The translations under genes and the position numbers were made by a program. The notes under the pieces are model-generated. The model ran no database searches and had not been told where the DNA came from. It was given only the letters and a program-made list of their open reading frames with translations. Below are positions 6,599 through 36,683 of a DNA stretch of 64,000 nucleotides, one piece after another. Position 1 is the stretch's first letter, and every line of letters starts with the position of its first letter. Origin of the DNA: Stegostoma tigrinum (Eukaryota); the NCBI RefSeq assembly GCF_030684315.1, contig NC_081387.1, forward strand, positions 1,344,497-1,408,496, written 5' to 3'.

Positions 6599-6729
6599 CT
6601 GTGTGCACAGTGTCAAAGAAAGCAATTTCCTGCCGCACCACTGATCGAAACACGGAGCTCTGAATACGTGTGTGGATGCCTGTCATTGTAACATTGTAGG
6701 CACAGTCGCAGAAAAACTCTGTCAGAGCA
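6599..6729 (-). CDS. TAP1: TAP1 coding exon 3 (131 bp)
   Basis: AG/GT bounded. Encodes ALTEFFCDCAYNVTMTGIHTRIQSSVFRSVVRQEIAFFDTVHT(G), with the ABCB coupling-helix motif RQE..FF. Confidence 0.97.
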
Positions 6730-6942
6730 CTGTGGGAGAGACAGGGAAATAGGAATTACAACGGTTAGACTGCACTGAGAACAGATATCCTGGGAGATAC
6801 AGGCATTGTACTGCTAAAGAAACGGGAATCACTGGATATACAGCACTCTGAGTGGGAATAAGTGAAGGGGAGAGGTCTGTTTTGACCCCCTCCGGGCCCC
6901 ACATCGGTCAGCCAGCATTGAGTGGATGTTGAATATGATTAC

Positions 6943-7057
6943 CTTGCGCTGGTGATCAAGGACATTGCAATGATGGAGTTGGAGAACGCTGAAGGGTCGT
7001 CTTCATTCATCACCCAGTCAGTCATCCGGCCAGTGTAATAGGGTATCGCCATCTCCC
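6943..7057 (-). CDS. TAP1: TAP1 coding exon 2 (115 bp)
   Basis: AG/GT bounded. Encodes (G)EMAIPYYTGRMTDWVMNEDDPSAFSNSIIAMSLITSA(S), the TAP1-type MAIP..TGR.TDW motif. Phase is compatible with flanking exons. Confidence 0.97.
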
Positions 7058-7869
7058 CTGGGAACACAGGAAGCCATGTGTGACCAATAATCAGTGGGAC
7101 AGTTCACAATCCCTTCGCTAGCCTGAGAGACCAACTGTCTCCCTGTGAACCCAATCCTAACCAGAGACCAGGGGCCCAAACTCAAATATTGAATGTTTTA
7201 TGGTGGCAATTTAGAACATACAGAATAGAACCATTCAACAAGGCCATGGATAAATCTGATAGCAGACTCTGCCACATGTGTGTAAGAGAATTCACATTAA
7301 GAGCTGTGTGTATACAATGTTGTGACTTTGCCTGAAAGTCAGTCTTGAAGCTGTACACACACATGACCACAGTAAGTTGCTGGTTTGATGCAATGACTGC
7401 TGTGTAACTTGTTTGTGTTTTACTATTTTAAGTGCAGTAGTGCACATGGTAATTGAGAAGGTAACTGATCACTAGACCATTATCATTCCAACATGTCAGC
7501 CTCCAATTCACATGCCAGCCTAAACATGATGACCAAAGAGTCCCTTTGCAATCCCTTCTTATTCCAACGGATAGCTTCAGGGAGGGAATTTTAACATCAG
7601 AGACACTCAAGAGGCCAGAACTGGAGGAGCACGGTGATCTCCGAGCTGGGGGAAATGGCGACTTCATTGATAACAGAGATCAGGTGATAGTGGAATTGGG
7701 AAACAAGGGCAAGCACTTTAAAATGAAGGTATTAAAATCGAACGCGTAAATCCATGGGTACAGGGGTGACAGGGAGATGAGACTTAGTTTGTTGGAATTG
7801 TCGAGTCTGAAGGGAATGATAACTGGTTTGGGGGTCTCAACAGCCAATGAGTTTCAGCAGTGGCAACAT

Positions 7870-8400
7870 TTGTGGATCTAGATCTGGGTGTCCTTGTACA
7901 CCAGTCACTGAAAGTGAGCATGTAGGTGGGAGCAGGCAGTGAAGAACACAAATGGTACATTGGCCTTCATTGCCAGAGGTTTCGAGTACAAGGATGTCTT
8001 ACGGCAATATATGTCTATATCTACCATATTCATTGGAGTTTGGAAGAATGGCATGGGAAGCCTCATTAAAAATCTAACAGGATCACACAGTAAATGCAGA
8101 TAGGATGTTCCCGATGACCAGGGAGTCCAGAACCAGGGGTGACAGTCTAAGGATACAGGGTGGGCCATTTAGGATTGAAATAAGGAGAAATGTCTTCACC
8201 TAGACAGGAGTGATGCTGTGGAATTCACTGCTATAGAAATTGGTTGAGGCCAAACATTGAATGTTTTCAAGTAGGAAATTAGATACAGATCTTAGGACTA
8301 AAAGGAGCAAAGGGTATGTAGGAGAAAGTTGGAACAGGGGACTGAGTTTGATGATCAATGCCAAATAGACTACTCCTGCTCCTATTTTCTACTTTTGTAT
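7870..8400 (+). mobile_element. CR1 LINE 3' fragment
   Basis: Typical CR1 ORF2 C-terminal sequence (AGGAGAAATGTCTTCACC...GTGGAATTCACT). Confidence 0.7.
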
Positions 8401-9209
8401 CCAAATAGTTTGGGTATCAACATGGAAGTTTGCGGTCATAATAGCAGCATGGAGATATGATTGGAAGGTCATCTCAGGGTCAAACGTTATTTTGTTATTG
8501 TTATCCTCTCATGGGCTGGGCCAGCATTTCTTGCCCATCCCTGGTTACCATTGAGAAGGTGGTGGTGAGCTGCCTTCTTGAGCCGCTGCAGTCCTCCTGC
8601 CGTAGGTAGGCCCACAATGCCCTTAGGGAGGGAATTCTAGGGTTTTGATCCAGCGACACTGAATTAATGACAATATATTTCCAAGTCAGGATGGTGAATG
8701 TCTTGGAGTGGAACTGGTGATGTTACCATTCAGCTGCTGCCCTCGTCCTTCTGAATGGAAGTGTTTGTGGGTTGGGAAAGTGCTTTCTGAGAATCTTTGA
8801 TGGTTTTATTCTGAGCACGTGAACTGTCTGATCTAACCTCAGATAGTCATCTGTGAGAGGGATGGGAGTCGATGGCGGTGCCATCTTTGAATGGTTGGCA
8901 AACTGGCAGACCTGTCCACATTGAGTGACCTGTGCACCGCCTGACTCTCACCCCATCCTTGTGGCACTACCTAATTCCCATTCCTCTCCTCCATCTCACC
9001 TCTTGACTCATTCTTCACCCTGCCCTGCAATGATACCTGATCTCCTAACTCCATTCACCCTTCACCAGCTCTGTTCGTCTCTGGACTCCTGATCCCTAGT
9101 TAATTGCGCAAGGACTATCACTGCACCACCACCCCCCCACCCCCACATTCCCACTGCACACCCCAGCCTCCCAATAATGCCCAGTCAGCAATGCCAGTGT
9201 ACATCTTAC

Positions 9210-9729
9210 CCAGTGAAGACAGGACCAGGAACAGCGCCACCACGAGGAAGCGGCCGATATCGGGCTTCATACAGGCCAGCAGTCGGGACACGGTGGCCTT
9301 GGTTCCTGCCTCGCCTGCGGACTGCCCTTTGGAGCCTGGAGGCGAGAAGTGCCAGCGCAGCAAGAAGACCAGGCCCGTGCTGGCGTAGTTGAGGGCCAGG
9401 GCACTCCAGTTGTGCAGCCCATAAAGCATCTCTGTGGAGGAGAGGCCAGCGGCCATCACCAGGCTGACGTAGGCCGGTGTGAGCAGGCCGGACATGACCA
9501 GCATCCAGGATAGATCCGTGGGCTGCAGCCAGGCCGGCAGCTTGGACCGGGAAAGTGAGCAGGCCTGCAATGCGGCAGCCAGCAGGCCCACACGCAGCAG
9601 TGAGAGCAGCCAGAGAGCGAGCACTGGCTCAGCCAGGCCCCAGTGGTACATGGCCAGGCTCAGTGTCCATGTGGCAATAACATCCAGCAGTGGAATGGAG
9701 ATCAGCGGAACAGTAAGTGTCATCTTCAT
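9210..9729 (-). CDS. TAP1: TAP1 (ABCB2) first coding exon: TMD0 and start of core TMD
   Basis: ATG at 9729, preceded by an in-frame TGA. Hydrophobic N-terminus ends ...KATVSRLLACMKPDIGRFLVVALFLVLSSLG, matching the TAP1 exon-1 end. GT donor (G|GTAAG) at 9209. Acceptor (tttcctgcttttgcag) at 9753-9755, so the exon starts at 9752. Confidence 0.95.
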
Positions 9730-9779
9730 TCAGCGGAGTTAGCCCAGAGAACCTGCAAAAGCAGGAAAAAAAAACCTCC

Positions 9780-10087
9780 TTTAAATACCATTACTGAGAG
9801 ATTATAAACTGGGCTAAATACTATTACTGACATCTTAAATAGGGTTAAATACCATTACCAAAGTATTTAACCCGAGAGATTAAACCAGGTAAAATATTGT
9901 CACCAAGTGATTAAACTGGTTAAATACTGTTACTGAGAGGTTAAACCAGGCTAAATACGTTACTGAGAGATTAAACCAAGTTAAATATGTCACCAAGAAA
10001 TTAAACTAGGTTACATTCTGTACTGAGAGATTAACCCATGTTAAATACATTACTGAGAGGTGAAACTGGTTAGATGTGTTACTGAGC
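9780..10087. repeat. Degenerate ~30-bp AT-rich tandem repeat (~10 copies)
   Basis: TAAATACnnTTACTGAGAGATTAAACCAGGT-like units. Confidence 0.85.
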
Positions 10088-11270: not shown

Positions 11271-11344
11271 GAGTGAGGAGTGATCAGGTAAAATACAACA
11301 GCACTGAGTTTAAACTGGGATCGACACAGCACCACTGAGATTTT

Positions 11345-12984
11345 CAGAGATAATGGGAACTGCAGATGCTGGAGATTCCAAGATAATAAAATGTGAGGCT
11401 GGATGAACACAGCAGGCCAAGCAGCATCTCAGGAGCACAAAAGCTGACGTTTCGGGCCTAGACCCTTCATCAGAGAGGGGGATGGGGGGAGGGAACTGGA
11501 ATAAATAGGGAGAGAGGGGGAGGCGGACCGAAGATGGAGAGTAAAGAAGATAGGTGGAGAGGGTGTAGGTGGGGAGGTAGGGAGGGGATAGGTCAGTCCA
11601 GGGAAGACGGACAGGTCACGGAGGTGGGATGAGGTTAGTAGGTAGCTGGGGGTGCGGCTTGGGGTGGGAGGAAGGGATGGGTGAGAGGAAGAACCGGTTA
11701 GGGAGGCAGAGACAGGTTGGACTGGTTTTGGGATGCAGTGGGTGGGGGGGAAGAGCTGGGCTGGTTGTGTGGTGCAGTGGGGGGAGGGGATGAACTGGGC
11801 TGGTTTAGGGATGCAGTAGGGGAAGGGGAGATTTTGAAACTGGTGAAGTCCACATTGATACCATATGGCTGCAGGGTTCCCAGGCGGAATATGAGTTGCT
11901 GTTCCTGCAACCTTCGGGTGGCATCATTGTGGCAGTGCAGGAGGCCCATGATGGACATGTCATCAAGAGAATGGGAGGGGGAGTGGAAATGGTTTGCGAC
12001 TGGGAGGTGCAGTTGTTTGTTGCGAACTGAGCGGAGGTGTTCTGCAAAGCGGTCCCCAAGCCTCCGCTTGGTTTCCCCAATGTAGAGGAAGCCGCACCGG
12101 GTACAGTGGATGCAGTATACCACATTGGCAGATGTGCAGGTGAACCTCTGCTTAATGTGGAATATCATCTTGGGGCCTGGGATGGGGGTGAGGGAGGAGG
12201 TGTGGGGACAAGTGTAGCATTTCCTGCGGTTGCAGGGGAAGGTGCTGGGTGTGGTGGGGTTGGAGGGCAGTGTGGAGCGAACAAGGGAGTCACGGAGAGA
12301 GTGGTCTCTCCGGAAAGCAGACAGGGGAGGGGATGGAAAAATGTCTTGGGTGGTGGGGTCGGATTGTAAATGGCGGAAGTGTCGGAGGATAATGCGTTGT
12401 ATCCGGAGGTTGGTAGGGTGGTGTGTGAGAACGAGGGGGATCCTCTTGGGGCGGTTGTGGCGGGGGCGGGGTGTGAGGGATGTGTCGCGGGAAATGCGGG
12501 AGACGCGGTCAAGGGCGTTCTCAATCACCGTGGGGGGAAAGTTGCGGTCCTGAAAGAACTTGGACATCTGGGATGTGCGGGAGTGGAATGTCTTATCGTG
12601 GGAGCAGATGCGGCGGAGGCGGAGGAATTGGGAATAGGGGAAACCAGTCCAACCTGTCTCTGCCTCCCTAACCGGTTCTTCCTCTCACCCGTCCCTTCCT
12701 CCCACCCCAAGCCGCACCCCCAGCTACCTACTAACCTCATCCCACCTCCGTGACCTGTCCGTCTTCCCTGGACTGACCTATCCCCTCCCTACCTCCCCAC
12801 CTACACCCTCTCCACCTATCTTCTTTACTCTCCATCTTCGGTCCGCCTCCCCCTCTCTCCCTATTTATTCCAGTTCCCTCCCCCCATCCCCCTCTCTGAT
12901 GAAGGGTCTAGGCCCAAAACGTCAGCTTTTGTGCTCCTGAGATGCTGCTTGGCCTGCTGTGTTCATCCAGCCTCACATTTTATT
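11345..12984 (-). mobile_element. Penelope-like element, 5'-truncated, with inverted pLTR
   Basis: ORF 11698..12567 has the GIY-YIG endonuclease (VVYCIHCTRCGFLYIGETKRRLGDRFAEH...PVANHF). ~340-bp inverted arms. 14-bp TSD ACCACTGAGATTTT at 11331-11344 and 12985-12998. Confidence 0.93.
11444..11473 (-). ncRNA. Minimal hammerhead motif, sense to TAP1 pre-mRNA
   Basis: Same 30-nt motif on the minus strand. Confidence 0.75.
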
Positions 12985-14461: not shown

Positions 14462-15724
14462 TCCATCTTGTGTATATTAGCCCTGGATGTATGGTTCTGG
14501 ATTGTGTACACTATCCCTGGCTGTATGTATGGCCCTGGGTCGTGTACCCTATCTCTGGCTGTGTACGTGGCCCTGGGTCGTGTATCCTATCCCTGGCTGT
14601 GTACGTGGCCCTGGGTCGTGTATCCTATCCCTGGCTGTGTATGTGGTCCTGGGTCGTGTATCCTATCCCTGGCTGTGTACGTGGTCCTGGGTCGTGTACA
14701 CTCTCCCTGGCTGTGTACATGGACCTGGGTTGTGTATCCTATCCCTCGCTGTGTACACGGTCCTGGGTCGTGTACGCTATCCCTGGATGTGTACATGGCC
14801 CTGGGTCATGTGCAGTAGCCCTGGCTGTGTACATGGCCCTGGGTAGTGTATCCTATCCCTGGGTCGTGTACATGGTCCTGGGTCGTGTACATGGCCCTGG
14901 GTCGCGTATCCTATCCCTGGCTGTGTACATGGCCTGGGTCGTGTATCCTATCCCTGGCTGTGTACATGGCCCTGGGTCATGTATCCTATCCCTGGCTGTG
15001 TACATGGTCCTAGGTCGCGTATACTGTCACTGGCTGTGTACGTGGACCTCGGTTGCCTACATTAACCCTGACTGTGTATGGTCTCAGGAAAGCACTGTTT
15101 TAAAAATGGGAGTAGGATTAAAGGGACCTGTGTGAGGGAGAGAAATCAGACAAAACTGGGGATTAGGTGATGAGAATTCGGGATTGGACACAGTACTGGC
15201 TCCCAGCAGTCAGCTGTTACGGTGTAGAAGGAGGCCATTCGGTCCATTGTGTTAGCACCGACTCTCCGAGGGAGCGTTGTTTCAAACAACCTTCCGAACA
15301 CCCAACACCGCCCCCCGGGCCCTGAATGTCTCACTTGGACTGGCTCCCCACTTCTTTGCGCCGCACACCCAACCCCGGGCTGTGTGAGAAATATTCCTAT
15401 CCTCGTTTGTCAACTTTTGTATCTTACACTGAACCTGTGTCCCGTAAAGAAAAAGTCGCCTGTATCAATGACAGAGGTGTCCCGTCAAGGCGTCTTTTAA
15501 AAGTGTGCGTTTTCAGCTGTGAGATGACAGAATTCAAAAGAAATCTGTTGAAAGGTCCAGGCACCAAACTGGAAGCAGCAAAGGGTGAGGTAACATCATG
15601 AGAAAAGGCAGGATCAGTATGACGGTGCCATATTACATTGCGGGGCAGCAGGCGCTTTGCAAATATTTTGGAAAAATCTGGATGTTCCTGAAACCCCAAG
15701 ACCCTTCTCTCTCTCTCACTCACT

Positions 15725-15799: not shown

Positions 15800-16057
15800 T
15801 TTCCCGGAAACAGACAAACTGACCTGTTTCTGCTGGAGCACAGCGGCCGGCGCTCTCTCTCTCTCTCTCTCTAACACACGGTGCTCAGGAGCTGGAGTTC
15901 TCTTCGGGAAAACGGCAAAAGGCTGGAGATAACCGACCTTGTCCAGCCACTCGGTAAACCTTTCAGCCGGGAATTTCCCCACACACCCTCCCTCTCCTCA
16001 CCGGGTCCGGAACCGCCTCTGTCAACACGGAGACTGAAAGTGAAACCAAGTGAAGCC
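15800..16057 (-). promoter_or_regulatory. Interferon/NF-kB-responsive TAP1 promoter
   Basis: GAS TTTCCCGGAAA at 15800-15810. kB site GGGAATTTCCCC at 15969-15980. ISRE/IRF-E GAAAGTGAAACC-AAGTGAAGC at 16036-16057. These motif classes are known from the mammalian TAP1/PSMB9 promoter. Confidence 0.75.
15824..15950 (-). other. TAP1: Predicted non-coding first exon (5' UTR) of TAP1; 5' boundary approximate
   Basis: Donor CAG|GTCAGT at 15823-15818, in a CpG-containing, repeat-free island just downstream of NF-kB and ISRE motifs. The coding exon has an acceptor 23 nt upstream of the ATG that needs a partner donor. Confidence 0.6.
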
Positions 16058-16149
16058 GTGCCCTTGTTCAATTCAATATACGAAGTGTCAGATATGCAGG
16101 GTTTTTTTTCTCTCTCTGTCACTCACGCATACACACGGGTCAATTGTTA

Positions 16150-18200
16150 GAATCGTACACCACAGAAGAGGCCATTCGAGCTTTTACCGCCAATAAATAC
16201 CACACCAACTCCATCTTCCCACACTAGGCTCGTAGCCTTGAATGTTATGACACTTAAAAGTGTTCATTCAGACGCTTATTCTAAAGGTTGTGAGGTTTCC
16301 CACCTCAATTACCCTCCTACATAGAACGTTCCAGACCCCCGCCACCCTCTGAACTGAAAATGTTTTTCTTCCAATCCCCGCTAAACCTCCTGCCTCTCAC
16401 TTTAAAATTTTATTGCTGAGTTAATGACCCTTTGCCGATAGACAAGGCTACTTTCTCTCCACCCTACCCCCTCAAACAGGTCCCCTCTCAATCTTCACTA
16501 ATCTAAACAAAACAAGTTCGTCACTTAAATGCCCCACTTCCAGGCAACATCCTGGTGAATCTCCTCTACATCCCTTCTATTTAAGATCACACCCTTCCTC
16601 TAGTGCAGTGACCAGAACTGCACACAGTATTTAGCTGTACTTACTTTGATGATAGTATAAGGTAGCGTTGGACGTTAGATAGACCTTAGGTTTAGGGTAA
16701 AATTTTGGCACAACATCATGGGCCAAAGGGCCTGGACTGTGCTGTACTGCTCTATGTTCTGTGGCCTACCCAAAATTCTGTACATCTCCAACACACCTCC
16801 TGGCTCTTATAATCCATGTCTTGGCTAAGACAAGTGACCGGTGTGCCTTCCTCATTACCCCGATTAGCCTGCCCTGCCATCTTCATGGTTCTGTAGACAA
16901 CTACCCTCAGATCCCTCTGTTTCTCTGAGCTCCCTGGTGTCCTACCATTCACTAAGGACTCTCTTGTCTTGTTCCTTCTCTAAAAGTACACCACCTCACA
17001 TTTATATTCATAGCGTCATTGAGATGTATAGTTCTCCTCATCCATGCTGACCACATATCCTAAATTAATCTAGTCCCATTTGGCCCATATCCTTCTAAAC
17101 CCTTCCTATTCAGATACCCATCTGGTGGCCTTTTAATTGTTGTAGTTGTGCCAGGCTCCACTACTTCTCCTGGGAACTTGTACCTTATATGCACCACCCT
17201 CTCTATGTAAAATGTCCCTTTTAACTCTTTCCCCTCTCACATTAAGCCTATGCCCTCTAGTTTTGGATTCACCGACCCCAGGGAAAAGACCTGTCTATTT
17301 ACCCTATCCATGCCCCTCATGATTTTATAAGCCTCTGTAAAGTCACCCGTCATCCTCTGATGCTCCAGAGAAAATAGCCCCAGTCTGTACTGCCTCTCCC
17401 TCCAAGCTTGGCAACATCCTTGTAAATCTGTTATGAACCCTTTCAAATTTCACAACATCCTTTCTATAGCAGGATTAAACTCCATCTATCCCTGATCTGC
17501 CCATCTGACCAATCCATTTCTATACTCATATAACCTAACAGCTTCCCCCCCAAGCCCCCATCGCCTCCTGGTCAATCAAGTGTCATCCACAAACATATCA
17601 ACCTCCTCCCCAACCCCGACCTCCCTGCCCACATTCTTATTTACATTGTTGATTAATATCACAAACAATAATGGACCCAGCATTGGTCCCCGTGTTATAC
17701 CGCTGCACACAAACAGATCTCTACCACCACCCTCTGTATCCAATCACTAAGCCAATTTTGGATCCATCTTGCTAAGTTGCTGTAACCTTTCACCTTCTTT
17801 ATCAGACTCCCATGTGGGACTTTGCTGAAATCTATATAAACTACATCAGCTACCCTACCCTCATCTGCATCTTGGTCACCTCCACGGAAAATTCCACCCT
17901 ATTTGTTCGCCATGACCTCCCTCTGACAAAGCCCCATGCTGACCCTCCCTGATCAAACCTTGCCTCTCTAAATGGAGATTAATTTTCTCCTTCACTATTT
18001 TCTCCAATAGTTTCCCTACTACTGATGTTATTCTCACTGGTCTATAGTTCCCTGTTCTATCTGTAAGACCTTTCTTGCAAAAAAGAACTATATTAGCCAT
18101 CCTCCAGCCCTCCAGCACCTCTCCTGTAACCAGAGAGGAATTAAAAATTTGGGACAGGATCCCAGTGACTTCCTCCCATGTCTCTCACAGCAGCAACACA
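16150..18200 (-). mobile_element. Cluster of CR1 LINE fragments
   Basis: ORF 17876..18118 has GNYRPVRITSVVGKLLEKI; ORF 17237..17446 has RLGLFSLEHQRMTGD. Confidence 0.85.
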
Positions 18201-19235: not shown

Positions 19236-21624
19236 TGAGGATCGTCTGATCCTGCATTTCTCTATTAATAAATCCCAGCACCCTGTATGTTTATTAATCC
19301 ACCCTCTCAACCTGTCCCACCACCTTCAACAATTTCTGCTCAGTTACCGTGCCCCCCGAGACCTTTTGCTCCTGTATCTCCCTTTAGATTTTGAATTGAT
19401 TGAGTTTTCTCTGACTCTGTGTCACCCACCACCCTCCCCACCCTCACTCTATCAGTCTTGCCCTGTCTCCCCCACAACAGTATTAGTGACCTTGATCACT
19501 TTATGAATGAACTGTTTCATGCAATTTAAAAAAAGTTCCAATTTGAAATGTAGTTTAATATGGACAGTATCTGTGTCAAGGAGTTGTCCACTTTTTTGTA
19601 GGGAAAACACAAGTTTATTTTTCTTCAAAGGATTTTTTTAAGATATAATTTTTGACTCACTTTCACCCAGTTTTCCTTTCAGTTTTCTTCTTTGTCTAAC
19701 TGATATGGTGAATAATTTACATTATTCAACTTGGGTTTCATTTTAAAATTCTAGGCTTAAAAACGTGTCTGCTTGTTTTTTTGCAATGAATGTTCTTTCC
19801 AGTAATGCTGTAGTCCTACCATTCTCTTTGGGGCTTCTTTCAAGTTCAGATGGTTCTAATAAAGGGCCACTGTTTTCTTTGAGGAGTTAGCAAAATGAGA
19901 ACCCAAGGTTACAAAGCAAGGTGCCCTGTGCAGCCAGAGCACCTGATTCAGCTAAAATGTTTCCTGAGGCTGAACAATAGAAGACCAAGCCCAGCATGGG
20001 GTAGAGATCGAACCCAACGGCGGGGTGTGGGGGATCGAGCCCAGAGTAGGGGGAGAGATCGAAGTCAGTGGGGAAGAGAGATCAAGCCCACTGCAGAAGA
20101 GAGATTGGGCCCAGCGCAAGAGAGAAATCAAGCCCTGTGCTGGAGGAGAGAGATCATGTGCTTGCGGGGAAAGCCCAGCATGGAGCAACTGCAGGCCCAC
20201 AGCTAAAGAAGGACTGTAATTTGAAAGTTTTAATTGGACGTTCCTACCTTACAGATGACAAACATAGAAAATGGTGCAGGAGTAGGCCATTCGGCCCTTT
20301 GATCCTTCCCCACCATTCAATACAATCATGGCTGGTCATGTAATTTCAGTATCCTATTCCCGCTTTCTCTCTATACTCTTCAAGCCCTTTAGCCATAAGG
20401 GCCACGTTAAGCTTCCTCTTGAATATATCTAACAAACTGGCCCCAACAGAAGGGTTCTGAATAAACGCATTGGAGCAACCTGTGATCCCGAGCTGAGAAC
20501 TCCAAAAATTGAATAAAACTTTGAACATTTTTCTTCAAATGTGGTGACCAATGAGCCCTCATTAGCTACAGCAATGCCTAAGGAAGTACTTGCTAGGATA
20601 ATCCTGATCTGAGTTGATTGTGATGCTCAAACAAACATGCTTATTATTTGCCATTTTCATGATATGTCATTGCTGCTTGTAGCTCCCAAATTTGAATTCC
20701 TACAGTGTGAAAAGAAGCCATTCGGCTCATCAGGTCTGCACCAACCTTCCAAAGAGCACCCCAAGCAGGCCCGCACCCTATACCTCTAATGCCACATTGA
20801 CCATAGCTAATCCACTCTCTAGAGACTATGGACATCTTTGGACTGTGGGAAGAAAGCAGAACACCGTAGACATGGGGGGAATGTTCAAACTCTACACAGA
20901 CGGTCGTCTGAGACTGAAATTGGAGCTGGGTCCCTGGTGCTATGAGGCAACAGTGCTAACCACTGAGCCAGCATGCTGCTCTCATCACCCCAGCCTTACC
21001 CTTCCATGCAGGACTCTAAGATGGTGGGACAAGAATGTAGATTAGTGAAAGAATTGCACTTTGATGCTATGGTTCTCCAACTAGCCGTTAGGGTAATCAG
21101 ATAACAAAAAACCCCAATTGGTTATGTTTCTTTTCTCAAAAAACTAGACATTTCTTCTTGTGCAGCATGCAAATGCTTGTAGAATTTTTGCCTCCCCTGC
21201 AAATGTAGAAATTTAGAGCCTGCTCCACCATTCAATATGACCGTGGCTGATCCTGTCTCTCAATGTTACATTCCTGTGTTCCCCCCTTGATGCCTCGAAA
21301 CTTAAACATTTGTCCATCTCTTGCTGGAATATATTCGATGGTGTGATACCCACTGCCTTCTGTGGTAGAGAATTCCACAGGTTCACTCCCCTTTGAGTGA
21401 AGAAATCATTCCTCATCTCGCCCCTGAAAGGTCTATCCCGTATTTTGAGAATATGTCCCTGATTCTGGACCCACCCCCCATTCAGGAGAAATCCTTTCCC
21501 TCTGTGCACCTAGTCTTTCCAGCCCTGTTAGAACTTTAAATGTTTCAGTCAGATATGAGACCACCAGGCCGAGCCACTGGAATACTGGGCTAGAAGTCTC
21601 TGCTGAGGAAGACCGCCATGCCAG

Positions 21625-22329: not shown

Positions 22330-23600
22330 TTCAAACTCATCGGTAACTGTTCTAGGACCATCCATGGAGTAGCTTTGGTGCAATTAGTCTTTTGCCTGAG
22401 TTGGCTGTGACTGAGAATTGGTTGGGTGGGAGAAAGCAGTGGACGATAGCTGAAGGGTGATTTTCTGCCTGGAATTCAGTGTCCAGTGTAGTCCCACAGG
22501 GGTCTGTGTAGGAGCCCTTGCTGTCTGTGGTTCACATAAACAATTTAGACTTGAATGATCAGTAAGATTGTGGATGGTACAAAAATTGGTCAGGTGGTAA
22601 ACAGTGGGGAGGAAAGCTTTAGAGATCAGGGGCAAATGGAATTCAATCCAGATAAATGCAACGTGTTGCACTAAGGCAGGACCAACAAAATACATGAAGA
22701 ACAGTAGGTTCCTGGAAAGTACCAAGGATCAGAAGGACCTTGCTGTGCATCTCCACCAGTATGATAAGGTGGTGGACAGTTGGATAAAGTTATTAAAGAA
22801 GCATATGGTATACTTGCCTTCGTTAACTGAGGCACAGAGTTTAAGAGCAGGGGGGTGATGCTGTACCTGTATAAAACATTAGTGTGACCACAGCAAGAGT
22901 ATTATGTTCTGGAATCACATAATAGGAGGAATGTGATAGCACTGGTGAATGTATAGAGGAGATTTACCAGGATGTTGTCTGAGCTGGAGAGTATACTTAT
23001 TAAGAGAGATTGGACAGAGCTGAAATAAAAAGGTGTAGAGCTGGATAAACACAGCAGGCCAAGCAGCATCAGAGAAGCAAAAAAGCTGACTTTTTGCGTC
23101 TGGATCCTTCTTTCCTGCTCCTCTGATGCTGCATTCATCCAACTCTACACCTTCTTATCTCAGATTCTCCAGCATCTGCAGTTTCTATTATCTTGGACAG
23201 AGCTGGGTTGTTTTCTTCGGAGCAGAAGAAACTGAGAAAGGACATGATTGCATAAACTTATGAGGAACATACTCAGAAAGAAACATTTCCCCTTGACGGA
23301 GGGATCAATGAGCAGGGGGCATAGATTAAAGTAAGGGGCAGAAGTTTAGAGGAGGAGATGTAAAAGTTTGTATTTTCACCCAGAGAGTGGTGGAAATCTG
23401 GAACTCACTGCCTGCAAGGGTGATAGAGGCAGAGACCTACATGACATTTATAAAGTATTTTAGACGTAAAATTGCATTGCCAGGGCAAACAAGGCAATGG
23501 GCCAAAAGGTGGAAAATCAGATTAAAATAGGCAGGTGGTATTGACCTGCACACACTTGATAGGCTTGAAGGGTCTTTTTCCGTGCTGTTGAGCTCTATCA
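22330..23600 (+). mobile_element. CR1 LINE fragment
   Basis: Degenerate ORF2 C-terminus, interrupted by PLE 23023-23192. Confidence 0.75.
23023..23192. mobile_element. Minimal PLE hairpin insertion
   Basis: Inverted pLTR ends. TSD TTGGACAGAGCTG at 23010-23022 and 23193-23205, inside a CR1. Confidence 0.8.
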
Positions 23601-23699
23601 CATTGACCTCACTACTACTCTCTTTCCCCACTCCCTCAGCAAGAGTGATCCTTCCTAAGAGGACGCTGAGCCCAGTCCTAACCCTTCTCCTTCCCCTCA

Positions 23700-23900
23700 T
23701 TCTCCAATAAGGAACCCCCTGCAGGTTCTCCTATATCCACAGGGGGCGGCAGATGCTGTCCCTCTGCTCGGAGCCTGCAAACACACTTGAATTCATAGAC
23801 TCTGCCCAGCAACAGATGGCGTTAAACCAGATCGTTATTCCGATTGGTCAACAGGTCCCCACCCTTTCCCGGAGAAGGGTTGATATTCCGGGAATCCCTC
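23700..23900 (+). promoter_or_regulatory. SXY + tandem GAS module, copy 1
   Basis: X1 CCCAGCAACAGATG at 23805-23818, X2-like TGGCGTTA, Y ATTGG at 23843-23847. GAS-like TTCCCGGAG at 23866-23874 and GAS TTCCGGGAA at 23886-23894. Confidence 0.75.
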
Positions 23901-23939
23901 AGAGGGCGGCGAGGGGGCGGGAACTTATTCTTGTCCAAG

Positions 23940-24095
23940 GAGCCAATCACAATATAGACATGGCTGCGTCATCTGTTGCCAGGCGAGGTTTGTGTATTCA
24001 GGTTTGGGTTTCAGTCTCTGAGCAGAGGGAGGCAGTCTCTGCCGCCCCCAGTGGACACTGGAGGATCGCAGGGGTCTCCACTCTGGAGAATAAGC
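23940..24095 (-). promoter_or_regulatory. SXY module, copy 2 (inverted relative to copy 1)
   Basis: On the minus strand: ISRE-like GAGACTGAAACC (24018-24007), S-like AAACCT (24005-24000), 16-bp spacer, X1 CCTGGCAACAGATG (23983-23970), X2 TGACGCA (23971-23965), Y ATTGG (23947-23943). Confidence 0.8.
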
Positions 24096-25819
24096 GGAGA
24101 GAGGGGGCAGGATAGGGGTTAGTGCCCTCTGAGGGATGGTACTGGTGCTGGGGAAGGGAGGGGATGTGGAGAGAGAGAGAGAGAGAGAGAGGACTGATAA
24201 TGAGAGAAAGATGGAGGTGGAGTGGTGATATAATAAGGTTAGGGAAAATTCAATCAATTCTAAACTTAAAGGGGGACAGAGGATCAGAGGGTCTTGGGAG
24301 TAAATGACCAGAAATCATTGAAGGTGGTGGGACAGGTTGAGAGGGCAATTAATAAACATTCAGGGTACTGGGTTTTATAAACAGAGGTATACAGTACTGA
24401 AACAAGGAGGTTATGTGAAACCAGGATAAGACGCTGGTTCATTCTCAGCTGGAGAGTTGTGTCCTGTTTCTTCAATCCCGATAGCTGTGGGGAGTCAGGC
24501 CTCTATACAAAGTCCCAATATATGTAAATGAATGACTCACTTGGCTGTCCAGGCTATGTTACAGCACGGAACATTCCCCACCACACCCCCACTACCCCGG
24601 CCAAAAACTCTTGCCCCACACATCCTTCCTCCCAGGGTGGCCCATATGGCAGATGACTGCAGGACTGAATAGTTCAACAGTCTGGAAGTATATTCTTGTA
24701 GAATGTCTGCTGGCCTGGGATCCCCCAAGGAAAGGGACACAGCATGTAAATGCTGGAAGACAGGGATCATATCTCCCACTTTCTTGGACATTGAATTGAA
24801 TGGGCAGCAAATTGCCAATGTGCTTCAGGAACCTGACACTGAGAATAGCTCCAAGAATTGTTAGGGTACGTAATGAGGCTAATCAGTCCATCATACTTGT
24901 ATTGCCACTCTGAACATTTTCATTTCCTGTCAATCTCCTGCCTTTTCTCCTGTCCATGTTCCTCTTGAAATAATCCTGTAGTGAATGCCTCATTCACCAG
25001 CCTCCTCTACATGTCCAGGCAGTATATTCCAGACCTGAGCTACATGCTGTTGTACAGCTCACATTTACTTATTTTGCCAATGACCTTATATAGTGGCCTC
25101 ACGTCCATAGATTTAGAGTCACACAGCACAGAAAGAGACCCTTCAGCCCATCTTGTCCATGCTGAACAGATTTCCTAAACTGAAGGATTCCTATTGGCCA
25201 CGTACCTGTCTAAATCACTTTTTAAATGTTAAAATTGAGTCTGCGTCTACTACTTCCTCTGACAGGGTAGGGGAGTCCACAATTAGAGGGTATAAATTTA
25301 AGGTGAGAGGGGAAAGATTTAAAAGGGACCTGAGCGGTAATTTTTCCTCACACAGCAGGTGCTGCAAGTATGGAACAAGCTGTCAGAGGAAGTAGTAGAC
25401 GCAGATTCAATTTTAACATTTAAAAAGTGATTTAAACAGGCACGTGGTTAGGGAAGATTTAGAGGGACATGGACCAAATGCAGGCCAATAGGAATCATCC
25501 CCTACCCTGAAGAAAAGACCTTTGTTATACACTTCATCTATGCCGCTCACAATTTTATAAATATCTTATAAGGTCATGCGTCATCTCCCACGCTCCAGGG
25601 TAAGAAAGTTCCAGCTATTAGGCTCTCCTTATAACTCAAATCTTCCAGTTTTGGTAACATGCTTGTAATTTTTCTTTTGCGCTCTGTCCAGTTTAATAGC
25701 ATCCTTCCTGTAGCAGGACAACAAGAATTGTATGCAGTACTCTAAATACGGTCTGACCAATGAGCCATAACTTTATTTCCCAAATGATGTACTCAACACT
25801 CTGAACAATGAAGACAATC

Positions 25820-26543
25820 ACGGAGGCTTGGGGACCGCTTTGCAGAACACCTCCGCTCAGTTCGCAACAAACAACTGCACCTCCCAGTCGCAAACCATTT
25901 CCACTCCCCCTCCCATTCTCTTGATGACATGTCCATCATGGGCCTCCTGCACTGCCACAATGATGCCACCCGAAGGTTGCAGGAACAGCAACTCATATTC
26001 CGCCTGGGAACCCTGCAGCCATATGGTATCAATGTGGACTTCACCAGTTTCAAAATCTCCCCTTCCCCTACTGCATCCCTCAACCAGCCCAGTTCGTCCC
26101 CTCCCCCCACTGCACCACACAACCAGCCCAGCTCTTCCCCACCACCCACTGCATCCCAAAACCAGTCCAACCTGTCTCTGCCTCCCTAGCCGGTTCTTCC
26201 TCTCACCCATCCCTTCCTCCCACCCCAAGCCGCACCCCCCGCTACCTACTAACCTCATCCCACCTCCTTGACCTGTCCGTCTCCCCTGGACTGACCTATC
26301 CCCTCCCTACCTCCCCACCTGCACTCTCTCCACCTATCTTCTTTACTCTCCATCTTCGGTCCGCCTCCCCCTCTCTCCCTATTTATTCCAGTTCCCTCCC
26401 CCCATCCCCCTCTCTGATGAAGGGTCTAGGCCCGAAACGTCAGCTTTTGTGCTCCTGAGATGCTGCATGGCCTGCTGTGTTCGTCCAGCCTCACATTTTA
26501 TTATCTTGGAATCTCCAGCATCTGCAGTTCCCATTATCTCTGA
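25820..26543 (+). mobile_element. Penelope-like element 3' fragment
   Basis: GIY-YIG C-terminus (EQQLIFRLGTLQPYGINVDF) plus pLTR, near-identical to 11345-12984. Confidence 0.9.
26414..26443 (+). ncRNA. Minimal hammerhead motif
   Basis: CTGATGAAGGGTCTAGGCCCGAAACGTCAG. Confidence 0.7.
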
Positions 26544-27964
26544 CACATTCTTCACCATCCTGTTTACCAGTGATGCGACTTACAAGGAACTATATATCTG
26601 CAATCCTACATCTCTCCATTTGACAACTCTACCTAGTGGCTTTCTATTAACAGTGGAAGTCATGCCCTAGTTTGTCTTAGTGAGTTGCTTGCGAGAAGGA
26701 AGAGTATTTTCCTGTACACTACGTTCATCTCCTTGATGTTATGAAATCTTCACCCCAGCAGCAAGGCTGGCTCAGAACCTTCTGAGCAGTGGTCTCCTGC
26801 TGGGCCAGCTCTGCGCTCACTGTGTCCAGTTGAAGATGGCGGGAAGGTCCTGGATGTCGCATGTCCAATCAGAAGGTTACCAGCTCAGGAGACCCAGTGC
26901 AAGAAGCAGAAATAGATGCAATAGTCCAATTGAAAAAGGAAGACCAAAAAATGCATACGGAATACTGTGTATGGGATTAGTTTCCTTACTGATGAAAGGA
27001 TGTGAAAGTGTTGGAGTGGTTCGGAGAAGTTTTACCAGAATAATACTTGGAATGGGCAGGTTGTCTTATATGGAAAGTTTGAACAGACTAGACTTACAGA
27101 AGCAAACAATGTTTTGATTGGCCCACAGAAGACCCTGAGGATGTAGAGAGTCTGATATCTCTTGTGGGCTAATCTAGAACTAGGTGTCATTGTTTAAAAA
27201 TCTAAGATCAGTCATTTTAGACAGAGACCAAGAAGGCTGTTTTACATAGAAACATACATAATGAACCTTAGAAAGATGGGGGAATGGGGAGATCTGATAG
27301 ATGCCCACAGAATACAGAGGACTGGGTAGAGTGGACAGTGAAAAGTTTCCGCTATGTGGGGAAAACTAAGACCTGAGGGTAGAGCCTTAGAGTTAAGGAG
27401 TGAGAACCAAGATGAGGAGGAATTTCTTTAGCCAGAGGGTAGTGACTCCGTGGAATTCATTGCTGCAGGGGTCTGTGGAGGCCAATTCATGGAGTGTATC
27501 TAAGGCAGAGATAGATAGAGATAAATAGGTTCTTGATTAGCAAGACAATAAAGGGTTATGGGGAGAGGGCAGGAGAGTGCGGTGTGAGAAACATATCACA
27601 TGATGGAGCACACTGGATGGGCTGAAATAGCCCAATTCCGCTCCTATATTTTGTGATCTTGTAGATTTTCACAAGGCAAGAGTATGGGAGGTTAATGAGT
27701 GGGGGAAGCAGATCAGCCTTAATCTCATTGAATGGCACAGCAGACTCGATGGACTGAATGCCTGTGCTCTCCTCCCCATGCATATGTTCTTATTGCACAT
27801 TCCCATTTGGGATCTTATCCAATTGCCACTCTCTGACACCAGCTCTCAGAGAAATTCCAGGCCTAGATTTCAGTCTGCACTAATTCCCTGTGAGTCACAA
27901 TCACCCGATGCCATTTTGCCCCATTCCAAAATTCCCTGATCCATACCCATCACTACCCAATGTC

Positions 27965-28185
27965 TGGGATTCCCGGAAAATGCCAACCCATTTCCGGGAA
28001 GGGGTGGAAGCCCATTCTGGCACATAGACGAATAAGAATAAATAGCTGCTTTTACGTCATCTGTTGCCAGGTAGAATCCGTGAAAACATGTTTGTTTCCA
28101 GTCTCCGAGCGGAGGGAGACAGCCTTTGCCGCCCTCATGTGGGCACAGGAGGATCTGCAGGCGTCTCCACTCTGGAGAATAAGGG
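27965..28185 (-). promoter_or_regulatory. X1X2 + tandem GAS module, copy 3 (Y box degenerate)
   Basis: X1 CCTGGCAACAGATG at 28071-28058 and X2/CRE TGACGTAA. The Y position reads ATTCG. Two perfect GAS sites at 27970-27978 and 27992-28000. Flanks are homologous to copies 1 and 2. Confidence 0.7.
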
Positions 28186-28489
28186 GAGGAGAGAGAGGGA
28201 ACAGGGCTGGGATCATATTCGTCTCAGGCAGGGTCACTGGTCACTAGCTGCGAGAGCGGGGATGTGGTATGGAGAGATGGAGGATTGATAACGTGAGAAG
28301 GAGATGATGATGAGTTATAAGTTCAGAGAGAACCCTCTCCATTCATAATCTAAAGGGGGACACTGGAGAAGTGGGTCCTAGGGGTAAATGGCCAGTAATT
28401 ATTGAAAATGGTGGGACAGGTTGAGAGGACAGTGAATAAACATACAGGGTACTGGATTGTATAAACAGTCAGACAAGACTAAAAAAGTT

Positions 28490-31365
28490 ATAGAGTCATT
28501 CAACATGAAAACACACCCTTTGGTCCAACCATTCCATGCTGATCCTTGCAAACTAAACTAGTCCCACCTGCCTGCTCCCGGCCCATATCCCACCAAAGCT
28601 TCCCTATTGATGTATCCATCAAAATGTCTTTTAAATGTCATAATTGTACCCGCCCCAGTACCTCACCAGGAAGGTCATCCCACAGGTGAACCACCCTCTG
28701 TGTAAAATATTTGCCTCATGTCTTTTATGAATCTCTCTCCTCTCATCTTAAAAATGTGCCCCTGGTCTTGCAAACCCCCATTTTAGGGAAAAGGCGACTA
28801 CCGTTACCTCTATCCTTACTTTTCATTATGTTATACACTTCCAGTAAGTCACCTCTCAGCCTACTATGCTCCAGTGAAAAAAGTTCCAGCTTTTCCTTAT
28901 AACTCAAACCATCCAAACCTGGCAACATCCTGGTAAATCTCTTCTGATTCCTGTGCAGCTTGATATTATCCTTCCTATAGCTGAGCAACCAGAAGTGGAC
29001 ACTGTATTCCAGAAGAGGCCTTACCAATGTCCTGTACACTTTCAACACAACATCCCAACTCCTACACTCAAAGAACCGAATAATGAAGGACAGTGTGCCA
29101 AGTGCTTTATTAACCATCTTGTCTACATGTGATGCAAACTTAAAAGAGTTATGTCCCTCTGCTTTACAACATTACTCAAGGCCCTACCATTAACTGTATG
29201 AGTTGTCCCCTTGTTTGTTGTACCAACTTGCAATGTCTCGCATTTATCCACACTGAACTCCATCTGCCATTTTTCATTCCTTTGTAATGTTAGAAAACCT
29301 TGCACAGAATCTTATCTAAATGTCAAATCTAGAGCACCCGGAAATGATCGCAAAACCATAACACCCTGAGATGTATGATCAGATTTAGGCAATTCAGCAC
29401 GTCGAGTCTGCTCTACCATTTGATCATGGCTGGTATGAATTTCAACCCCATTCTCTCACCTTTTCTGTGTTCCCATCTTTGTCCTCACTAATTAAGAACC
29501 TACTTCTCTCTGTTTTACGTGTCCTCAATGACATGGACCTGACATCCCACTGAAGCAATAAGTTCCGCAGATTCACCAGTCTTTGTCTGAAGAATTTGCT
29601 CCTCATCTCAATTTTGAAGGTCATCCCATCACTCTGAGGCTGTGCCCTCAGGTCCTAGTCTCTCCTGCTAGTGAAGCATTTTCTCAATGTCCACTGTGTC
29701 CAGGCCTCTCAGTATTGTGTACGTTTCAATGAGATCCACCACATCCTTCCAAATTCCATTGAGTACAGATCCAGAGTCCTCTAGTGCTCATCGCATGATA
29801 AGCACTTCATCCTCAGGATCATTCTTTGTAAATCTACTCTGGACCCCATTCAACACCAGCACATCTTTCTTAGATACTGGACCCAAAGTTGCTCACAGTA
29901 TTCCAAATGTGGTCTGACCAGTGCTTTATACAGCCTCAGATGCACACCCCTGCTCGTGTATCCTGCCCTTTTGAATGTGGTGCCACTCTTTCAGAAAGGT
30001 GTTAAGGAAAATCCAGGGAACTATGGATAGGTCAGCTTGATGTTGGCGGTAGGCAAGTTGTTGGAGGGAATCCTGAGGAACAGAATTTATCTCTATTTGG
30101 AAAAGCAAGGACTCATTAGGGATAGTCAACATGGTTTTGTGCATGGGAAATTGTGCAAACTTCTGCCCCCAATCAACATTTGAAAGTTCTTGATAGAGAT
30201 TTTTGAAGAAGTAAGAAGAGCATTGATGACAGCAGAGCGGTGAGCATGACCTATATGGACTTCTGTACGGCGTTCAATAATTTCCTCATGGTAGACTGGT
30301 TAACAAGGTTAGATCACATGGAATAGAGGTCAAATTAGCCATTTGGATACAGAACTGGTTTGAAGGTAGAAGACATGGGGTGGTGTTGGAGGGTTGCTTT
30401 CTAGACTGGAGGCCGGTGACCAATGGTTTGCCACAAAGATCAGCAATGGGTCCACTGCATTTTGACATTTATGCAAATATTTGGGTGTGAACATAGGAGA
30501 TATGGTTAGTAAGTTTGCAGGTGACACCAAATTATGAGGTGTAGTGGAAAGAAGGTTACCCCAGAGTACAATAAGTTTTTGATCAGATGGACCAATGGGC
30601 CAAGAAGTGGCAGATGGAGTTTAATTTAGATAACTGGGAGGTGCTGTATTTTGGAAAGGCAAATCAGGGTAGGATTTGTATACTTAATGTTAAGATCCTC
30701 GGGGTGTTGCTGAACAAAGAGACCTTGCAGTTCAGGGTCACAGTTTCTTGAAAGTGGAGTCTCAGGTAGATAGGATCATGAAGAAGGTGTTTGGTATGCA
30801 CACCTTTACTGGTCAGAGCTTTGAGAATAGGAGGTCATGTTGCAGCTGTATAGGACCTTGGTTAGGCCACTTTTGGAATACTGCATGCAGTTCTGGTTTC
30901 CATCCTATGGGAAGGATGTTGTGAAACTAGAAAGGGTTCAGAAAAGATTTACAAGGATGTTGTCAGGGTTGGAGGGTTTGAGCTACAGGGAGAGGCTGAA
31001 TAGTCTGGGGCTATCTTCCCTGGAGCATCAGACGTTGAGGGGTGACATTTTAGAGGGTTATAAAATCATGAGGGGCATGGATAGTGTAAATAGGTTAGTT
31101 CTTTTTCCCAGGTTGGGGGAATCCAAAACTAGAGGCATACATTTCAGGTCAGAGAAGAAAGATGTAAAAGGGACATAAGGGTGGAGGCAAGTATGATTAC
31201 AACAGTTGAAAGACATCTCGATGTGTATATAAATAGGAGGGGTTTACAGGGATGTGGACCAAATGCTGGTAAATGGGACAAGTTATATACGATGTTTGGG
31301 TGAGGGCATTTGATGAGTTGGAGTGATGGGTCTGATTTTGTGCTGTATATCTCTCTGACTCTATG
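28490..31365. mobile_element. CR1 LINE cluster (minus 28490-29960, plus 29970-31365)
   Basis: ORFs 28743..29117 and 30837..31178 have LYRTLVRPLLEYC.QFW.P.Y.KD..KLERVQKRFTRM. Confidence 0.9.
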
Positions 31366-34538: not shown

Positions 34539-35816
34539 AGAGGCTTTTGTGCTCCTGAGATGCTGCTTGGTCTGCCGTGTTCATCCAGCTTCTGGGATTT
34601 ACATTCCCTAATATGCATTGCCTGACCTGAGGTGTCACCTCTCCTTTACTAATAAAACCCAATAGTAATCTCAGGGCAGTGACTTGATTATCTTATTATC
34701 TTGGATTCTCCAGCATCTGCAGTTCCCATTATCTCTGATACATTTTCGGATTTAGACCCTTCATCAGAGAGGGGGATGGGGAGAGGGAACTGGAATAAAT
34801 AGGGAGAGAGGGGGAGGCAGACCGAAGATGGAGAGAAAAGAAGATAGGTGGAGAGAGTATAGGTGGGGAGGTAGGGAGGGGATAGGTCAGTCCAGGGAAG
34901 ACGGACAGGTCAAGGAGGTGGAATGAGGTTAGTAGGTAGATGGGGGTGCGGCTTGGGGTGGGAGGAAGGGATGGGTGAGAGGAAGAACCGGTTAGGGAGG
35001 CAGAGACAGGTTGGACTGGTTTTGGGATGCAGTGGGTGGGGGGGAAGAGCTGGGCTGGTTGTGTGGTGCAGTGGGGGGAGGGGACGAACTGGGCTGGTTT
35101 AGGGATGCAGTAGGGGAAGGGGAGATTTTGAAACTGGTGAAGTCCACATTGATACCATATGGCTGCAGGGTTCCCAGGCGGAATATGAGTTGCTGTTCCT
35201 GCAACCTTCGGGTGGCATCATTGTGGCAGTGCAGGAGGCCCATGATGGACATGTCATCTAGAGAATGGGAAGGGTAGTGGAAATGGTTTGCGACTGGGAG
35301 GTGCAGTTGTTTATTGCGAACTGAGCGGAGGTGTTCTGCAAAGTGGTCCCCAAGCCTCCGCTTGGTTTCCCCAATGTAGAGGAAGCCACACCGGGTACAG
35401 TGGATGCATTATACCACATTGGCAGATGTGCGGTGTGTGGACTTCACCAGTTTCAAAATCTCCCCTTCCCCTACTGCATCCCTAAACCAGCCCAGTTCGT
35501 CCCCTCCCCCCACTGCACCACACAACCAGCCCAGCTCTTCCCCCCCACCCACTGCATCCCAAAACCAGTCCAACCTGTCTCTGCCTCCCTAACCGGTTCT
35601 TCCTCTCACCCATCCCTTCCTCCCACCCCAAGCCACACCCCCATCTACCTACTAACCTCATCCCACCTCCTTGACCTGTCCGTCTTCCCTGGACTGACCT
35701 ATCCCCTCCCTACCTCCCCACCTATACTCTCTCCACCTATCTTCTTTACTCTCCATCTTCGGTCCGCCTCCCCCTCTCTCCCTATTTATTCCAGTTCCCT
35801 CTCCCCATCCCCCTCT

Positions 35817-35846
35817 CTGATGAAGGGTCTAGGCCCGAAACGTCAG
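35817..35846 (+). ncRNA. Minimal hammerhead motif
   Basis: CTGATGAAGGGTCTAGGCCCGAAACGTCAG. Confidence 0.7.
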
Positions 35847-36683
35847 CTTTTGTGCTCCTGGGATGCTGCTTGGCCTGCTGTGTTCATCCAGCCTCACATT
35901 TTATTATCTTGGAATTCTCCAGCATCTGCAGTTCCCATTATCTCTGATCCTGTGACTTCTGACTGTTTGGTGGAAAATTTGGGAGATGTTTACCAGTACA
36001 TTACATTGACCAGGATCAAACAGTGTGATCTGGCTTTGATCCATTGATTGGCTGAGTGCCAGAGAACTTTATGGAATGGAATAAATTGTCAAATAAGTGA
36101 ACAGAATGTGAGATTTCTTTTCTGAGAGAGAGAGACTACACTGGAAAAGCGCGCGACCTCAAGTTACTCTTAGAGAGAACAAAGAACCATCTGATGTGAC
36201 TTAAATGGAGAATAAAGTTGAATATTTCATTCGAATCAGGGTAGTGTTTAGTTCAATCCAAACTTCCAGAGCTAAAGAGTTAGGGTTAAATGTGAATTCA
36301 GCAAAGAAAGATAGAAGGAACTAAAATTAAGTGAATTGAAGTTGAAGTGATGTTAGATGAAATAAGGCATAAATGTTACAGTGAGTGCATGTTTTATTTT
36401 CAGTATTGATACTTAAAGAGGTAAAATAAAGAAGAGTTCATCTGAGCTAGTTCCCTGCCTTTTGTCTGTCACACAGGAGAAGCATGCCTGGGTTGAAGGT
36501 CTGTGTGCTCCCATTTGGGCACCTGTTAGCCTTCTGTGGGCCTTTGCTCAGGAGTGACTTTAAGTTGGTCTAAGGCCAAACTCACCCTATTGAACGGTAG
36601 AGATGGATTGATCGGTAATTGGAAACAAATCAGGTGTTTGCTGAGTGTGACAGAAAAACTGCAAAATTTGTGAAGGGAATCTG

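Follow-up and report, generated by a model that had tools for sequence, protein, structure and literature searches.

The DNA analyzed here is a stretch of 64,000 nucleotides from the zebra shark, Stegostoma tigrinum (assembly GCF_030684315.1, contig NC_081387.1, positions 1,344,497 to 1,408,496 of the forward strand). It is referred to below as the window and is numbered from its first letter. The window belongs to the class Ia region of the zebra-shark major histocompatibility complex (MHC). It contains the first coding exons of TAP1, exons of a class I-type gene and, in the transposon-rich interval between these two genes, three copies of a promoter-like cassette, two of which are fused into a palindrome. 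The cassettes resemble the SXY (S-X1-X2-Y) module of the promoters of MHC class I, MHC class II, B2M and TAP1/PSMB9 genes. RFX5/RFXAP/RFXANK, CREB/ATF and NF-Y bind that module, and CIITA or NLRC5 reads it; the sequence of the S/W box decides between the two.

The palindrome extends from 23625 to 24161 and consists of two inverted arms, copies L and R, of ~270 bp each and 71–78% alike. The diverged inverted arms of ~200 bp described in the initial annotation are real, and they proved to be larger than claimed when examined with MAFFT and blastn. A sensitive blastn search returned a self-inverted match over 23626–24161, and the MAFFT alignment of 23670–23900 with the reverse complement of 23900–24130 gave a mean column identity of 78%. 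A collinear series of inverted repeats (I7, I4, I2, I6, and I3) pairs 23678–23821 with 23967–24122. The axis, at ~23894, is the midpoint of both X1 boxes and of both Y boxes. Because it also coincides with the 3′ edge of the central gamma-interferon activation site (GAS), TTCCGGGAA, there is no spacer between the arms. The L and R cassettes face each other, not outward, and meet ~47 bp after each Y box, which by the cassette layout is roughly where a transcription start site would be expected.

The third copy is a direct repeat of R located 4.1 kb away and is not palindromic; all three fit within 4.7 kb. The direct repetition of R and copy 3 covers ~580 bp (24441–23858 vs. 28527–27946) and includes a transposon-derived flank that was duplicated together with the cassette. 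L shares the cassette core only, and its homology to copy 3 begins at ~23625. Pairwise identities among the three copies are 71–77% and do not resolve the order of events. The element from which the co-duplicated flank derives has an independent copy at 19290–19470; a match at 19311–19470 was considered as a further cassette copy and rejected, since it covers the transposon flank only. The palindrome center (23894–23907, plus strand) and the upstream end of arm R (24124–24137, minus strand) are connected by a perfect inverted match of 14 nt, ATCCCTCAGAGGGC. This match is out of register with the main arms, which hints at a more complex rearrangement history. The coordinates of the cassettes, their motifs and the neighboring genes are collected in Table 1.

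Table 1. Cassettes, motifs and gene features in the window (positions numbered from the first letter of the window)
Feature	Position	Strand	Basis or remark
Left arm, copy L: SXY-type cassette reading left to right	23625–23894	+	Inverted repeats, alignments, self-blastn
Right arm, copy R: same cassette reading right to left, head-to-head with L	23895–24161	-	Inverted repeats, alignment, blastn
Copy 3: direct repeat of R	27966–28262	-	X1 hit, blastn, three-way alignment
Transposon-derived flank co-duplicated with R	24166–24440	+	Counterpart 28267–28527; blastn
GC box of L, GGGGGCGGCA	23741–23750	+	R counterpart ~24041–24054; copy 3 ~28128–28142
S-like hexamer of L, ACACTT	23783–23788	+	Ends 16 bp before X1; weak match to S boxes
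X1 (RFX) box of L, CCCAGCAACAGATG	23805–23818	+	Pattern search
X1 box of R, CCTGGCAACAGATG	23970–23983	-	Pattern search
X1 box of copy 3	28058–28071	-	Pattern search
X2 site of L, TGGCGTTA, like a cAMP response element (CRE)	23817–23824	+	Degenerate; overlaps last two X1 bases
X2 of R, TGACGCAG	23964–23971	-	CRE half-site
X2 of copy 3, TGACGTAA	28052–28059	-	Perfect CRE
Y box of L, CGATTGGTC (ATTGG)	23843–23847	+	24 bp after X1
Y box of R, TGATTGGCT on the minus strand (ATTGG)	23943–23947	-	22 bp after X1
Broken Y box of copy 3, ATTCG	28029–28033	-	24 bp after X1
CACCC box of L	23857–23864	+	Three-way alignment
GC box CCCGCCCCC, R version of the CACCC box	23913–23921	-	Three-way alignment
GAS-like site 1 (GAS1) of L, TTCCCGGAG	23866–23874	.	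One mismatch; decayed or lost in R
Perfect GAS/ETS-core site (GAS2), TTCCGGGAA	23886–23894	.	At palindrome axis
Two perfect GAS sites of copy 3	27992–28000, 27970–27978		
TAP1 coding exons, residues 1–324	5375–9752	-	9729–~9205, 7058–6945, 6737–6597, 5581–5375
Candidate TAP1 promoter and non-coding exon 1 (exon ~16060–15824), CpG-island-like	15801–16060	-	Predicted from sequence; island stretch 15801–16400
Class I-type alpha-3 (C1-set, 6e-14) and transmembrane exons, open reading frame ranges	58866–59643	-	

In the three-way alignment the cassette reads, in order, GC box, S-like box, X1/X2, Y, CACCC box, GAS1, and GAS2. The motifs at its heart are far more frequent than expected: the X1 pattern CCYRGCAACAGATG gave three exact matches in the 64 kb against 0.12 expected, and an X1 core followed by ATTGG at a spacing of 20–26 nt was found twice, against 0.01 expected from shuffled sequences. 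L and R are paralogues, so this composite excess counts as one ancestral event. A relaxed scan of the 64 kb found no good X-Y module outside the cassettes. The initial annotation had reported RFX X1 boxes at 23805 and 23983, X2/CRE-like sites, and ATTGG 24 and 22 bp after X1, and all of these were found. The S-X-Y architecture that it proposed also matches published spacings, occupied SXY modules having 16 bp between S and X and 20–22 bp between X and Y (Ludigs 2015, PMC4374748).

Two other elements of that description stood in part. An S-like hexamer had been placed exactly 16 bp before X1 in each arm; the position is correct in both, but the sequence is only weakly S-like. The corresponding hexamers of R (AAACCT) and copy 3 (AAACAT) lie at the same 16-bp distance, and in all copies the match to S boxes, as read directly from the sequence, is weak. 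The GAS sites and the GC box, which had been described as lying between the two modules, are indeed present. However, the same CACCC box and GAS pair follow the Y box of copy 3, so these sites are part of the repeated unit. Perfect GAS sites of the form TTCCNGGAA occur five times in the window against 1.75 expected, and four of the five are in cassettes or at the TAP1 promoter region described below. The upstream GC box has a core, GGGCGGCA, that is invariant in the three copies. Signs of decay are also seen: copy 3 has a broken Y box, R no longer has GAS1, and the X2 site of L is degenerate. Half of the window's six matches to the CTCF core with two mismatches fall within cassettes, at 23896–23910 (plus), 24121–24135 (minus) and 28128–28142 (minus), with the total count at chance level.

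Contigs of four runs, one of them a DNA run from a sister species, were placed on positions 22800–28700. In the sister-species run the depth on the cassettes was 7–25, compared with 1e3 to 3e6 on neighboring transposon bins; the co-duplicated transposon flank had a depth of 850 vs. ~8 on the cassette. One sister-species contig of 793 nt crosses the axis and spans 23374–24157 at ~92% identity (62 mismatches, 7 gaps), and further contigs from that run cover copy 3. Because this contig bridges the axis at single-copy depth, the palindrome is low-copy and older than the split of the two species. Two small same-species runs of unspecified type yielded repeats only and nothing on the cassettes.

Sequence constraint was assessed by several comparisons. 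Comparison of R with copy 3 gave 73.0% identity (K 0.335) for the cassette core and 76.5% (K 0.28) for the co-duplicated transposon flank; the core is therefore not slower-evolving than presumably neutral DNA of the same age. The ~92% identity of the cassette to the sister species equals that of the unique flanks, which is 90–93% (53 mismatches in 792 positions, 36 in 445, and 26 in 271). Among the three copies, 39 of 57 motif columns (68%) are invariant vs. 101 of 179 other columns (56%), a difference that is not significant. For X1 alone 12 of 14 columns are invariant, with p = 0.036 uncorrected for seven motifs. CpG sites are conserved between copies in 50–64% of cases vs. 71–77% for other sites, a modest difference. 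From these comparisons there appears to be at most a faint hint of protection for X1 and the center, and the cassette as a whole bears no clear sign of selection.

The gene on the left side of the interval is TAP1. The open reading frame (ORF) at 9121–9729 on the minus strand is its first coding exon; residues 1–174 are identical to S. tigrinum TAP1 XP_059495381.1 and 89% identical to nurse-shark TAP1, and a later exon matches human TAP1 at 1e-12 vs. 7e-5 for TAP2. The ATG is at 9729. Because a polypyrimidine tract and an AG at 9753 precede it, forming a 3′ splice site at 9753/9752, there is a non-coding exon upstream. An array of 30-bp repeats (9781–10086) lies directly upstream of the TAP1 coding exon. 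The window covers TAP1 residues 1–324 only, compared with 778 residues in nurse-shark TAP1 and 334 in the RefSeq zebra-shark model. The remaining 5.3 kb to the left end of the window contains transposons, and no further TAP1 exon was found in it; either a very long intron follows residue 324 or the gene, or its model, is truncated there.

The best candidate for this upstream exon is at 15.8–16.1 kb. This CpG-island-like stretch contains the sole interferon-stimulated response element (ISRE) of the window, GGTTTCACTTTC, at 16036–16047, a perfect NF-kB site, GGGAAATTCC, at 15970–15979, and a GAS site at 15801–15809, and its ratio of observed to expected CpG (CpG o/e) is 0.74. A splice donor, CAG/GT at 15824/15823, ends the candidate exon. 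The stretch is thus probably the TAP1 promoter with a non-coding first exon, followed by a first intron of ~6 kb that would end at 9753. A tandem array of ~15 units of 38 bp (14497–15078) adjoins the island region. The palindrome is 8 kb from this candidate promoter, a distance that fits the earlier statement that it lies ~8 kb upstream of TAP1; the cassettes as a group are 8–12 kb from it.

On the right side are an alpha-3 exon and a transmembrane exon of class I type. Within the window, the 4.4 kb upstream of these exons yielded no alpha-1/alpha-2 (MHC_I) domain; the gene either continues beyond position 64000 or is a fragment. A protein homology search with the alpha-3 ORF, limited by its length filter and word index, returned no match. 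Between the TAP1 and class I exons there is transposon debris, comprising GIY-YIG/Penelope-like elements and fragments of integrase and reverse transcriptase.

No gene served by the cassettes was detected. ORFs of at least 42 residues between 19.7 and 28.7 kb had no MHC, Ig, or proteasome Pfam domain, and up to 58 kb only transposon domains were present; for the 389 ORFs between 19.7 and 64 kb the only Pfam matches were C1-set, rve, RVT_1, and low-complexity ones. No proteasome, ABC, or class I signature turned up in a motif scan, tblastn queries with the alpha-3 and transmembrane exons of the window detected no relic, Rfam returned no family over 15–30 kb, and no PSMB exon was found in the window. 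The claim that no ORF or exon follows either module thus holds at the Pfam level. Because there is no Pfam gene domain, alpha-3 relic, or Rfam family near the cassettes, the label "orphan" is correct at this sensitivity. None of the cassettes directly precedes the start of an antigen-presentation gene; the closest candidate start belongs to TAP1 and is 8 kb off. The SXY-like modules are inside the MHC, as TAP1 and the class I alpha-3 exon in the window indicate, yet away from any promoter.

The reading that we favor, although tentatively and with slightly less than even confidence, is that all three are copies of a single ~300-bp promoter cassette of MHC type that have no gene, were left over from duplication and inversion, and are now drifting. 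The cassettes would be promoter remnants of gene birth-and-death or of rearrangement, evolving without selection. R and copy 3 would have arisen by a direct segmental duplication that carried the neighboring transposon fragment along, and L would be an inverted copy joined to R at about the point where transcription would start. The face-to-face fusion is unusual, and a rearrangement scar is its simplest explanation. Elasmobranch species differ by rearrangements in their MHC class Ia region (PMC10751288). What the analysis shows directly is the repeat structure, the motifs with their spacing, the low copy number, the occurrence in a sister species, the lack of exons close by, and the neutral-like divergence; we infer the promoter origin, this order of events, and the lack of a selected function. 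As judged from their motifs, the boxes and spacings of L and R appear intact enough for RFX, CREB/ATF, and NF-Y to assemble, and incidental binding or weak enhancer activity is possible.

Several observations weigh against cassettes that are merely drifting. The 11-nt X1 core, GGCAACAGATG, has been kept in all three copies after ~25–30% divergence, and every other invariant run in the three-way alignment is shorter. R and copy 3 are identical over 17 nt of X1X2, although equally long runs occur elsewhere, including in the transposon flank, and about one such run is expected by chance in the whole alignment. The cassettes contain 28 CpGs vs. 12 expected at an o/e of 0.2 (p = 7e-5), and their CpG o/e is four to six times that of the co-duplicated flank. 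This excess was considered as a sign of protection, but it largely vanished under G+C-matched controls: the o/e values of L (0.43) and R (0.38) are ordinary, the median of G+C-matched windows of the same sequence being 0.39. Those of copy 3 (0.57) and of the 179-bp center (0.69) are above 90% of such windows and could reflect germline hypomethylation through factor binding. For comparison, a CpG-island promoter has an o/e above ~0.6 over at least 200 bp, and the TAP1 island has 0.74. SXY modules of high quality and correct spacing are rare and are mostly occupied in the mouse (PMC4374748). The candidate TAP1 promoter has no SXY module in the relaxed scan, a gap that a distal module would fill. 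Finally, enhancers are often little constrained in sequence, and neutral-like rates are compatible with activity.

The main alternative is that the palindrome, perhaps together with copy 3, functions as a distal enhancer or an element like a locus control region. According to this account, RFX, CREB/ATF, and NF-Y on each arm would recruit NLRC5 or CIITA, STAT or ETS proteins would bind the central GAS sites, and the element would loop to the class I gene, to the TAP1 promoter at a distance of 8 kb, or to both. We regard this as possible but doubtful. The canonical X1/X2/Y spacing of both arms (PMC4374748), the invariant X1 core, the concentration of perfect GAS sites in cassettes or at the TAP1 promoter, and the lack of an SXY module at that promoter, which has an ISRE and an NF-kB site, are all consistent with it, as are the retention of the palindrome in the sister species and the CpG o/e of its center. 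There is also mammalian precedent, since distal S-Y enhancers bound by RFX and CIITA and X-box-like elements are known near class II genes (Masternak 2003, Krawczyk 2004, Gomez 2005, as cited in PMC1904273 and PMC2278383). On the other side, the core is not slower-evolving than its co-duplicated flank, and its identity to the sister species is that of the flanks. The difference between motifs and spacers is not significant, the arms have the CpG content usual for their G+C, and the S box is weak. All of the constraint tests that were run gave negative or ambiguous results for the enhancer or locus-control function put forward in the initial annotation. It is rather unlikely that the more specific form of this proposal applies, in which the face-to-face, complete SXY platforms sharing central STAT/ETS sites would be an interferon-responsive control element for the linked shark TAP1 and class Ia genes, and distal SXY control would date to the jawed-vertebrate ancestor and extend to the class I pathway.

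One or more cassettes might instead be the proximal promoter of an unannotated transcript, a reading that we consider improbable. Either TAP1 would have an alternative distal first exon under the control of R or copy 3, or divergent non-coding RNAs would begin at the axis. The layout is that of a TATA-less promoter with its expected start ~50 bp after the Y box, which is the axis. R and copy 3 are oriented like TAP1, and the 3′ splice site before the TAP1 coding exon implies upstream non-coding exons. However, the stretch at 15.8–16.1 kb is a better TAP1 promoter and has a splice donor, no exon-like ORF or Rfam family is found near the cassettes, and the two small same-species runs of unspecified type had nothing on them.

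An interspersed repeat, such as a foldback element or a miniature inverted-repeat transposable element, that carries the motifs by accident is very improbable. Its palindromic shape, the three copies within 4.7 kb, and the transposon-rich surroundings would suit such an element. A transposon origin was ruled out by the single-copy depth in the sister-species run, against thousands to millions on neighboring transposons, together with the absence of a further copy in the 64 kb by blastn and relaxed scan. In addition, the arms are 22–29% diverged and copy 3 is not palindromic. The cassettes are accordingly not a high-copy dispersed repeat, the outcome that the initial annotation had named as fatal to its proposal. 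Chance co-occurrence of motifs, which are short and common, or an assembly artefact, since chimeric long reads can yield palindromes, is scarcely credible given 0.01 composite matches expected in shuffles, the divergence of the arms, and the sister-species contig that spans the axis. The transposon, chance, and artefact readings are essentially excluded.

When compared with the proximal SXY modules of known promoters, the shark cassettes share an X1 box followed by an abutting CRE-like X2 site, a Y box (inverted CCAAT) 22–24 bp after X1, and an S-like element 16 bp before it. The shark X1X2 string is presumably almost that of HLA-DRA, a resemblance that we use as a lead and not as a test. The cassettes differ in having no gene, a weak S box, and GAS/ETS sites downstream of Y. 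The second comparison is with the distal S′-Y′ module of the HLA-DRA / mouse Ea locus control region and the class II distal S-Y enhancers. These have been shown to bind RFX and CIITA and to drive extragenic transcription (Masternak 2003 and Krawczyk 2004, cited in PMC1904273 and PMC2278383). They too are SXY-type modules located kilobases from the promoter served, and they can be inverted relative to it. In contrast, the shark modules are fused face to face, and their nearest target is a class I pathway gene.

X-box-like (XL) sequences are scattered in the human class II region (Gomez 2005, as cited above), and one of them, the XL9 insulator, has been linked with CTCF (PMC2292219). Like them, the cassettes are X-box copies without a gene, located in intergenic MHC DNA and probably produced by duplication. 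XL sequences are mostly an X box alone, whereas in the shark a full X1-X2-Y unit survives, and the CTCF-like matches in the cassettes depart from the core at two positions, the number of such matches in the window being at chance level. The mammalian TAP1-PSMB9 bidirectional promoter is interferon-responsive, has GAS, IRF, NF-kB, and Sp1 sites, and shows one NLRC5 peak common to both genes (PMC4374748). It belongs to the same pathway, but in the shark the ISRE, the NF-kB site, and the CpG island are at 15.8–16.1 kb and not in the palindrome, and the window lacks a detectable PSMB exon.

SXY modules and their orphan or distal copies are well described in mammals. The initial annotation knew of no such element in these fish, and our search of the literature on SXY, NLRC5, or CIITA promoters in cartilaginous fish likewise gave no description. 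The mammalian MHC box order and spacing of a shark cassette suggest that RFX, CREB, NF-Y, and the NLR co-activators read a DNA grammar about as old as the MHC itself. Should the orphan copies prove active, distal SXY elements would be documented for the first time outside mammals and for the first time in connection with class I processing genes, with a bearing on the co-regulation of linked class I, TAP, and proteasome genes in a "primordial" MHC. If they are relics, as we favor, they would be a record of gene birth-and-death and inversion in the class Ia region and a natural experiment in the decay rate of enhanceosome sites that are no longer used.

Among the transposons of the window, the GIY-YIG (Penelope-like) element has copies at 3865–5275, 11313–12684, 25696–26667, and 34691–36044, with an internal repeat of 39 bp. 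Two of its copies form a nested inverted pair at 34.7–36.0 kb, and the copies of this element were the deepest bins in all four runs.

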